From Botryllus schlosseri (taxonomy: Eukaryota): DNA of 64,000 bases. Positions 6,001-7,655 of the stretch are shown here, one piece after another. Under the pieces are notes generated by a model. The model saw nothing but the letters and a program-made list of their open reading frames with translations, had not been told where the DNA came from and ran no database searches. The stretch lies in assembly GCA_051294905.1 (NCBI GenBank), contig CM119381.1:992001-1056000 (forward strand), given 5' to 3'. Numbering within the stretch: position 1 is the first letter of the stretch; every line of letters begins with the position of its first letter. The position numbers were made by a program, and so were the translations under genes.

Positions 6001-7655
6001 AATTGTCTAAAATACTTCAAGGGAAAGCGGAGTATAAAGGCATGAAACGTACTCGAGTAGTTGCAAAAATCGATTTGGTTGAAGTGTTGCAAATTTAAGC
6101 AGATAATTGTAGGTGGCTACTATTTCAATTTCTCAGATATACTAACTACTTGAAGAGGGATATGAAAGTCTGAGAAGTACTCCTCAAGTAGATGGAAAGT
6201 TGGATCTGGTCTAGGTTGTCGCAAACTATTGAGGTGTGAAATCCTGCTACACAGGTCGATTTAGCATCGGCAGAAAGCAAAACCTTAGAACGATTTTCTA
6301 GCTTGGAGTTGACACGATGGAAAGTAATTTGTATCCGACGCCTCTAACAGTTTTTATGGTAGTTTTGAAAAGTGGATTTTACTCAAAGTTGTGCATTTTC
6401 ATTGATGTCTTCAGGTGTTCAGGCCCCGCACGCCGCAGGACGCCATCGGTTTATGTAGCAGGCTGCTGGAATACTCGCCGGGCGCGCGCATATTACCGCT
6501 GGAGTCGTGCGCCCATGCTTTTTTCGACGAGTTGAGGAATCCCAAGACGTTGCTACCCGGGGGCAAGCCGCTGCCGCCCTTGTTTAATTTCACGCAACAA
6601 GGTGGGTCGTGGATTGATGGAGCTTGCATCATACTTGTACACTTGTACAGTACAAATGTCGTTCCAAACGGTTGCAGGACCGTATCAAAGAACACATTCC
6701 ACCATCTGTCAAATCTTATATCTCAAATTCGCAGCTTAACAATCCGCTTGTTCTTGAACATAACCAGGCCATGGGTCAAAAATCTTCTATAGGCAAACAT
6801 TTACTGGAAAATCATACGTGTGCTGCTAACTATCACGAGGACATGTTCTCTATATTGGCTAAGGGTCGCAATTTATTTCATTTGTCTGTTCTCGAGTCCA
6901 CCATCATCACTATGAGCAAACCTAGTCTATGCCAACAGAAAGAATTTGTGTATCATTTGAAAATCGCGCATTAACTTGTTTTGCTTCGCTATCTCCATGC
7001 CAACGCTTCAGTTCTCTCGTTTTCCTAACTTTGTATATTTTCTGTGTGACGTCATAATTAGCGATATATATTGTTGCTGAACATAGTTATTCGAATTCTC
7101 GCATTATTGCTGACGATATTCCCCTGACGAGGGTCAGCCGAAAAGCTTCGGGAATAAAATGAATATTTTATACAAATGTAGTTCTAGTTCTACTGTAGTA
7201 TATTCAGGAAGACCACGAATTAGATTTAAAATTTGAAGATGAAAATTAAATTGAGAACTATATTATCGTAATTGTGCTGCTGAAGTCTGATCTTCTTACA
7301 ATTTGTGTTTCCATCGTTTCATTTTTCATCTATTTTCCTTTTTTAACTAACATTTTTACAGTCAAACTGTTTAGAGTCAAGTGTACCTGTTTGATGCTGG
7401 TGTGATCAGACTAGATGACCTTCACAGTCTTATCGATCATTCCTATCTAATACCGAATACTGTGCATGCATATTTTCTGTACCACCATCACTGCCGTGTG
7501 TTATGTATTTTGGCTGGACGTTAAAAAAGACTCTCTCTCTTTCATTCCCAGAGCTCTCGTCAAAGTCTCAGCTCTACAACATCTTAATACCTCACCACGT
7601 CCGGAACCCCTCGTCGACCAGCCCAACGGGAAGTGCGGTGGAGGTGCACGCGTGA
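53..7655 (+). CDS. GSK3: Glycogen synthase kinase-3, 3' part (5' exons lie upstream of the window). Coding exons: 53-163, 1474-1604, 2961-3067, 3127-3224, 5850-5945, 6415-6601, 7552-7655 (stop TGA 7653-7655)
   Basis: Spliced translation [197 protein letters not shown]. All junctions are GT-AG with matching phases. The terminal exon is not in the ORF track and was found by matching the ELS..ILIPPH-like motif. Confidence 0.97.
454..1114. mobile_element. Fold-back MITE with long inverted arms and a TA target (Tc1/mariner-like); related fragments recur near 4.2-4.4, 37.6-37.9, 41.4-41.8 and 49.9-50.2 kb
   Basis: Termini GGGCTCTTCAAAAATGAC / GTCATTTTTGAAGAGCCC, each flanked by TA. The two arms give the mirror ORFs 467-700(+) and 901-1101(-). 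Confidence 0.85.
3251..4148. mobile_element. hAT-type MITE with GACTCGAGTC/CAAGT subterminal arrays, in a GSK3 intron
   Basis: TIR CAGTGTTGGGAT / ATCCCAACACTG; perfect 8-bp TSD TGGTCTAC at 3243-3250 and 4149-4156. Confidence 0.92.
4890..5663 (+). mobile_element. hAT (Buster/Charlie/SPIN-like) internal-deletion derivative with a decayed transposase C-terminus
   Basis: TIR CAAGGGTCGGCAACC / GGTTGCCGACCCCTG; perfect TSD CTATAAAG. The interior translates with stops as [42 protein letters not shown], resembling the hATC dimerisation region. Confidence 0.9.
6650..7160 (+). mobile_element. 5'-truncated Penelope-like retroelement (GIY-YIG endonuclease C-terminal part plus 3' region), in the last GSK3 intron
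   Basis: ORF 6624-6974 reads ..[73 protein letters not shown], the typical C-terminal GIY-YIG pattern of Penelope-like elements. A hammerhead motif follows it. Confidence 0.85.
7117..7156 (+). ncRNA. Minimal type I hammerhead ribozyme; predicted cleavage after C7149
   Basis: TATTCCC-CTGACGA-GG(GTCAG)CC-GAAA-AGCTT-C-GGGAATA: 7-bp stem I, complete CUGANGA/GAAA/UH core, 2-bp stem II and palindromic stem III (AAGCTT). This is the architecture of hammerheads associated with Penelope-like elements. Confidence 0.85.

Follow-up and report, generated by a model that had tools for sequence, protein, structure and literature searches.

The last intron of the GSK3 gene of Botryllus schlosseri contains an intact hammerhead ribozyme motif, which raises the question of whether the motif acts on the GSK3 message or is a passenger of the mobile element in which it lies. 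We addressed this question in a window of 64,000 nt (assembly GCA_051294905.1, contig CM119381.1, positions 992,001-1,056,000, forward strand), and all positions given here are coordinates of this window. A preliminary description of the same DNA had noted the motif and proposed that it might tune GSK3 output. Our analysis points to a different answer: the motif is very probably an ordinary hammerhead of a young family of Penelope-like elements (PLE), recently inserted and not fixed, with a core that is intact through youth.

The motif at 7117-7156 consists, in this order, of UAUUCCC, CUGACGA, GGGUCAGCC, GAAA, AGCUU, C and GGGAAUA, and can be divided as follows.

7117 to 7123, plus strand: 5' strand of helix I, UAUUCCC.
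7124 to 7130, plus strand: core positions C3-A9, CUGACGA, conserved in three families.
7131 to 7139, plus strand: G10.1 (7131), a 1-nt linker (7132), the proposed 3' strand of helix II, GUCAGC (7133-7138), and C11.1 (7139).
7140 to 7148, plus strand: G12, A13 and A14, then the helix III palindrome AAGCUU (7143-7148).
7149 to 7150, plus strand: predicted cleavage site after C17, between these two positions, by hammerhead numbering.
7150 to 7156, plus strand: 3' strand of helix I, GGGAAUA.

All invariant hammerhead positions were present (C3-A9, G12-A14, the A15.1-U16.1 pair with U at 7148, and C17 at 7149). Helix I comprised seven Watson-Crick pairs between 7117-7123 and 7150-7156, and AAGCUU at 7143-7148 was a perfect palindrome. 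Locally, helix II, which the preliminary description does not mention, was limited to G7131-C7139 and a single further G-C pair across a bulged base that varies, with no hairpin beyond. A strict descriptor combining the core, G10.1/C11.1, a palindromic helix III and a helix I of at least 5 bp found 7117-7156 as its sole match in the window and had no match in 60 simulated windows of the same dinucleotide content, while the core-only pattern alone was not significant in the window (21 matches versus 8.75 expected). The complete catalytic core, the 7-bp stem I and the palindromic stem III AAGCUU of the preliminary description were thus all borne out by the sequence and the strict descriptor, and so was its view that a Penelope-like remnant carries, in its tail, a minimal hammerhead of dimer type. 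Its placement of the motif at the 3' end held for the remnant, but not for the very end, as element-derived sequence runs 14-23 nt beyond the motif. With helices that covary across three families (see below), the motif counts as a genuine hammerhead of a PLE. A possible second hammerhead with the upstream CUGACGA (7110-7116) as its core was rejected, as no GAAA follows the would-be helix II.

The element around the motif, to which we refer as a family-1 copy, has the following parts.

6662 to 7170, plus strand: 5'-truncated PLE copy, sense to GSK3, with genome matches of 98-99% identity.
6662 to 6974, plus strand: 3' end of the element's open reading frame (ORF), the C-terminal part of the putative GIY-YIG endonuclease region including RLQDRIKEH, with the stop at 6972-6974.
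7157 to 7170, plus strand: element tail, equal to the start of the next unit, with the ORF ATG at 7159-7161, from the tandem-array comparison.

In a BLAST search 6662-7179 matched at least 40 scored genomic places with 98-99% identity, from 803 first-look candidates. The copy retains the last 100-odd ORF codons and the 3' untranslated part with the hammerhead. Family-1 units were found spaced exactly 2722 bp head to tail in three arrays, with opposite-strand copies nearby. One unit, opened at the predicted cleavage site, encoded 848 open codons and, from the first ATG, 845 amino acids without a stop; in the arrays this ATG stands 9 nt after the cleavage site. The 845-aa frame contained a reverse transcriptase domain (Pfam RVT_1, E 1.3e-9), and the C-terminal GIY-YIG-type motifs VIYEFKC, YVGRT and RLQDRIKEH were visible in it, while Pfam gave no GIY-YIG match at E up to 0.01. 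The genome contained 62 exact occurrences of the motif's 40-mer and 200 when up to three mismatches were allowed, while the reversed control pattern did not occur. The family is young and probably still active.

Several further observations concern this family. At one locus (L031, G000:C7:8978000-8987000) and its neighbours up to 8999000, at least seven family-1 units are clustered, each carrying the exact 40-mer; three of them, head to tail on one strand, face several on the other. This is a candidate source locus of the young family. Cleavage would leave a 9-nt leader, GGGAAUAAA, before the ORF AUG (15 nt in a second family described below), and this leader contains AAUAAA. A perfect TGACGTCA palindrome at 7047-7054, resembling a cAMP-response element, lies within the terminal repeat about 100 nt upstream of the element ATG.

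How the copy arrived could be followed at its junctions.

6651 to 6659, plus strand: left copy of a 9-nt duplication, TACAAATGT, present once in empty-site contigs.
6660 to 6661, plus strand: CG at the 5' junction, belonging to neither target nor family; family copies read AC there, and the BLAST match starts at 6662.
7171 to 7179, plus strand: right-hand TACAAATGT of the duplication, matching the element's own letters at 8/9 positions.

We mapped two contig sets, X5 (organism A) and X9 (organism B), and two RNA runs, X24 and X21 (organism B), on 6400-7700; no sequence of X21 mapped there, so this run is no test. X5 carries the same organism label A as the sample in which the window sequence is best represented, and comes from a distinct sample and study. 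A 267-nt contig of X5 ran from 6608-6650 directly into 7171-7394, with 43 nt and 224 nt on either side of 520 skipped nt and with nine letters that fit both sides. A 1244-nt contig of X9 contained 6400-6641, then 12 letters corresponding to 6642-6650 with three extra bases, then 7171-7391. Both contigs are precise empty sites with TACAAATGT once. The insertion is therefore polymorphic, as the empty site was assembled in both organisms; it is real, recent and not fixed. In consequence, the earlier statement that every GSK3 pre-mRNA contains the motif fails.

The age of the copy was estimated against 32 other copies of the family, from whose majority it differs at four sites. Position 7097 is a within-family polymorphism, and 7172 lies inside the junction repeat, where the A is the letter of the target and not the T of the family. 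This leaves two private substitutions (6806 and 6893) in 509 bp, or 0.4%. With so few private changes the intact core needs no cause beyond youth, and there is no room to detect selection. The preliminary description had offered recent insertion or selection as explanations for the intact core; the former is favoured by the two private substitutions, the 200 near-identical motifs and the retention of the tail on truncation, and the latter is not. It had also named a rare polymorphic insertion with neutral divergence as the contrary outcome. Polymorphism, from the empty-site contigs, and neutral divergence were what we found, so that this outcome was reached in part.

Taken together, a 5' truncation, two extra 5' letters, a 9-nt duplication and variable 3' ends make up the signature of the insertion. 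Because the right copy of the 9-nt repeat is 8/9 identical to the element, the repeat might represent either a target-site duplication or microhomology priming. Family-1 insertions end 23-75 nt beyond the cleavage site, and 5' truncation of family copies always keeps the 3' tail. As the insertions extend beyond the cleavage site, the template RNA was uncut at the ribozyme; such a tail past the ribozyme is typical of Penelope-like elements (PMC8557442, PMC11167929). Very probably, target-primed reverse transcription recently placed the 5'-truncated copy 6662-7170 in the last GSK3 intron, 60 nt from its start. This process always preserves the 3' tail holding the ribozyme, and the copy has since had almost no time to decay. 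In the arrays, the hammerhead 9 nt upstream of the ORF start presumably processes multimeric element RNA as a dimer via helix III, as the literature leads us to suppose (PMC4209133, PMC6765202), and the element protein might aid this processing (PMC11167929).

The preliminary description had further suggested a function for the motif in its present place, namely that the hammerhead, acting in trans or as a dimer of two transcripts, cuts the pre-mRNA of GSK3 ahead of the last splice and thereby tunes GSK3 output; on this reading the intact core would reflect selection. The gene is arranged around the insertion as follows.

6415 to 6601, plus strand: penultimate GSK3 coding exon, from translation against GSK3-beta, with donor GT at 6602-6603.
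6602 to 7551, plus strand: last GSK3 intron, 950 nt, GT..AG, phase 1, from the sequence and an RNA splice joint.
7552 to 7655, plus strand: coding part of the terminal GSK3 exon, with the stop at 7653-7655.

Translated 6415-6601 matched GSK3-beta chains at residues about 270-331 (E 2e-24), and the splice joint from 6601 to 7552 was carried by four reads of X24. The sense orientation in the last GSK3 intron was confirmed, with the motif 402 nt before the acceptor where about 400 had been given. This intact, sense position speaks for the proposed function, as do possible partner transcripts of the family at low level (read depth up to 11 over the element part) and the precedent of the intronic self-cleaving ribozyme of CPEB3, which affects its host mRNA (PMC10274809). 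Against it stands first that other chromosomes lack the insertion. A functional intronic ribozyme would be expected to be present at the orthologous site, and the site was empty in X5 and X9; the copy is also too young, with its two private changes, to tell whether it is conserved beyond neutral expectation, which leaves the proposed selection without room to be detected. The same motif exists about 200 times, and that of a sister family more than 4,000 times. The intron holds no second copy for a dimer in cis, and published PLE hammerheads are inactive as monomers (PMC4209133).

Folding and RNA reads were also considered. The active secondary structure had a predicted energy of -2.6 kcal/mol versus -12.3 for the minimum free energy structure; in a cofold of two molecules, the minimum-free-energy structure included an intermolecular 6-bp helix. 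In the work of Cervera and De la Pena, PLE hammerheads were inactive as monomers and of low activity as dimers (PMC4209133); the PLE hammerhead studied by Frangieh et al. required the protein of the element for cleavage and was dispensable for insertion in vitro (PMC11167929). Self-cleavage in GSK3 pre-mRNA would be expected to be negligible, since the motif stands alone there as a monomer, with 2 bp in helix III and with stable hairpins in competition. In X24, depth was about 5-12 over the exons, the reads over the element could come from any family copy, and the unique sequence of the intron (6620-6707 and 7192-7323) received no reads. No accumulation of read starts or ends was reported at any position, including 7149/7150, where the depth of at most 2 was too low to count as a test of cleavage. 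On this modelling no meaningful cleavage is expected of the GSK3-intron motif, and we would expect the insertion to be neutral or mildly deleterious. We regard tuning of GSK3 by cleavage as so improbable that it deserves next to no credence: the regulatory reading is not supported, nothing suggests regulation of GSK3, and the empty alleles undercut it.

An effect of the insertion on GSK3 in carriers might also come from other signals of the element, either AATAAA at 7153-7158 or a promoter-like terminal repeat with the TGACGTCA palindrome. Both sequence signals are present in sense, and promoters are known in PLE terminal repeats (review PMC6765202). Premature polyadenylation at this AATAAA would, if true, drop the last 34 GSK3 codons. 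The hexamer is however common in AT-rich introns, and the lack of X24 reads in the unique intron parts, together with no poly(A) loose ends near 7170-7190, argues weakly in the other direction, as the RNA sample may lack the insertion. We consider such an effect very improbable.

Some points weigh against our preferred reading of a recent, unfixed and functionally silent insertion. The filled allele was seen in the assembly only, so that its frequency could also be common. Contigs show presence and not absence, and X5 may be heterozygous. Folding ignores tertiary contacts and pseudoknots, which makes the prediction of a weak monomer soft. Because X24 may lack the insertion and had no reads in unique intron sequence, this run has no bearing on an effect on GSK3 RNA.

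Two features of the gene itself were observed along the way. An exonic variant at 6561 (G>T) was present in 8/8 X24 RNA reads and in the contig of organism B, and another at 7607 (C>T) in 7/13 RNA reads; both could serve as markers of allele-specific expression. The 3' part of the last intron contains a very high-copy dispersed repeat at 7330-7543 (left boundary provisional), which ends 8 nt before the acceptor AG and may contribute part of the 3' splice-site region. A first look at the genome gave 1,883 candidates for this repeat at about 93% identity. Its word depth in contigs was about 100,000-196,000 in X5 and up to 9,400 in X9, with about 5 and 3 in the unique flanks, and it was the most-read part of the mapped stretch in RNA (depth up to about 150).

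The motif could also be placed among its relatives. The window itself holds at 34749-34831 the decayed tail of a second Penelope-like family; this tail keeps the upstream box (see below) intact, has G in place of A6 and has lost helix I and the palindrome of helix III. This older copy illustrates decay over time, unlike the intact GSK3 copy. A search with it led to family 2, which is much larger and whose similarity is limited to a motif of roughly 60 nt. The 28-nt 5' half of the family-2 motif had 4,022 exact genome occurrences, and its A6G form had 70. Family 2 is older than the family of the GSK3 copy, with more than 4,000 copies of the related motif. Its hammerheads are among the commonest short repeats of the 495-Mb genome, often in close inverted pairs (examples L041-L071). 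The spread of a subfamily with the dead A6G core (CUGGCGA), which would imply dispensable catalysis, was rejected on the 70 exact copies against 4,022 intact ones; the excess of A6G in our first sample resulted from the use of the decayed window copy as query.

A pattern search revealed a third family, which differs in the core position N7 and in its helices. Family 3 (L073, L078, L080, L082, L090, L091, L094 and L095, around position 1501 of each) has the core CUGAAGA, helix I UUCACUG/CAGUGGA or UUCGCUC/GAGCGAA, its own upstream box ACUGG pairing with CCAGU, and an ATG about 20 nt past the cleavage site. In this first pattern search 17/25 matches were family-2-type copies with loop changes; the box was apparently unchanged in most, so that these changes seem uncompensated, as expected because the pattern itself required such changes. 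The 17 decayed loop variants, selected in this way, were omitted from the covariation alignment. A second pattern search for a fourth family returned only decayed family-2 copies.

The comparison of the three families allowed us to address the short local helix II, for which we propose a further strand.

7109 to 7114, plus strand: upstream box GCUGAC, the proposed 5' strand of helix II (pseudoknot), complementary to 7133-7138.

Helix I differs wholly between families and pairs in each (UAUUCCC/GGGAAUA, ACCC/GGGU, UUCACUG/CAGUGGA, UUCGCUC/GAGCGAA), and across families 4/5 inner pairs show changes in both partners. Helix III remains palindromic in each case: families 1 and 3 have GC at its centre, family 2 has UA (AAUAUU). 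Every invariant core base is kept in all three families, the linker position 7132 varies freely (G, C, U or A), and G10.1-C11.1 was paired in 15/15 cells of the alignment. For 7109-7114 with 7133-7138, 88% of cells were paired, and 3/6 pairs changed on both sides among these three families only. In family 3, with box ACUGG(U/C) and strand ACCAGU, both partners are substituted in pairs 10.2-11.2 and 10.6-11.6 and, in two copies, also in 10.7-11.7. Over the full pseudoknotted structure (alignment A4), 91% of cells were paired and 8/15 pairs changed on both sides, while controls slid by one to three columns reached at most 41% paired and 2 pairs; this covariation support represents three families and few independent events. 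We lean, by a narrow margin of confidence, towards a pseudoknotted helix II in these PLE hammerheads, in which after G10.1 and a single linker base 7133-7138 would pair with the box 7109-7114. In such a topology, which we favour to the same slight degree, two bases would tie together the distal ends of helices I and II. No description of a helix II formed with an upstream box was found in the PLE-hammerhead literature compared, which did not include Lunse 2017.

The same data bear on whether the motif is a hammerhead at all, or a mere lookalike without catalysis that serves as a pair of hairpins (CUGAC/GUCAG and CCGAA/UUCGG) or as a binding site for reverse transcriptase. Rfam had no match in the whole window at gathering score and none for 6900-7400 at E up to 10, a silence that is expected, because the minimal PLE forms were discovered with descriptors and not with covariance models (PMC4209133). 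A genome search with RF00163 likewise returned nothing, but it was silent in control genomes too and is uninformative. The minimum-free-energy fold is the two-hairpin form, with the competing hairpin CUGAC (core)/GUCAG dominating thermodynamic predictions, and hammerhead mutants did not impair PLE insertion in vitro (PMC11167929). However, conserved hammerhead bases largely dictate the second hairpin, and the first does not hold in family 3, where two of its pairs have 8 and 6 unpaired cells out of 15, while the hammerhead helices covary. The CUGAC/GUCAG hairpin had been considered as a conserved mask of the core; it is 99% paired in families 1 and 2 and, being broken in family 3, is not conserved. 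The retention of all invariant core bases in three families and the rarity of the core-killing A6G form (70 versus 4,022) also argue for a hammerhead, and we see only a slim chance that the motif is a lookalike.

Amniote intronic hammerheads HH9 and HH10 are conserved at orthologous positions across many species and cleave as monomers. The HDV-like ribozyme of CPEB3 (PMC10274809) resembles our case as a sense-strand motif of self-cleaving type in the intron of a conserved gene, and ribozymes of this kind are the model on which the proposed tuning of GSK3 is built. It is however kept at the orthologous position across many species and cleaves as a monomer, whereas the GSK3 motif shows presence/absence polymorphism, about 200 near-identical copies and a dimer-type helix III.

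Closer likeness was found with the minimal type-I hammerheads of PLE (PMC4209133; Lunse, Weinberg and Breaker 2017, as cited in PMC6765202). Shared traits are the conserved core, G10.1-C11.1, an open-ended helix I, a very short palindromic helix III that implies dimers, and a terminal-repeat site next to the ORF; like those hammerheads, ours are mostly solitary in truncated copies, number hundreds to thousands per genome and often occur in inverted pairs. In the published consensus helix II is a hairpin of 6-8 bp and helix I has 4-5 bp, whereas here the local helix II has 1-2 bp and the rest apparently comes from the 6-nt upstream box. Poseidon of Anolis carolinensis (PMC11167929) also has a hammerhead at the ORF start and a tail beyond the ribozyme that shows an uncleaved template, and its RNA-seq was without read ends at the cleavage site, as was X24 at its low depth. 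In Poseidon the cut falls 26 nt past the start codon, while here it falls 9 nt ahead of it, and reverse transcription of Poseidon started without target homology, while our junction shows an 8/9 match of target and element. Non-circularly permuted hammerheads of type SGC/CSG (PMC10085705) are similar in that pseudoknotted helices hold the core and helices I and II are joined at their distal ends by a short linker. They permute whole core blocks, whereas here the normal type I order is kept and only the 5' strand of helix II would have moved upstream.

As a regulator of GSK3 the motif would have been a rare case of a mobile ribozyme co-opted to control a central signalling kinase, but the evidence points the other way. 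The GSK3 insertion is a new copy of a known element-borne ribozyme type, the way in which helix II seems to form being its sole unusual aspect, and covariation supports an unusual, possibly undescribed way of forming this helix in this group of hammerheads. The insertion shows the mode in which a PLE inserts, with a template that continues past the ribozyme and a junction at a near-match of target and element. It is also a clean, datable and segregating PLE insertion with filled and empty alleles in hand, and heterozygotes offer a natural test for the effect of a sense intronic minimal hammerhead on its host transcript.

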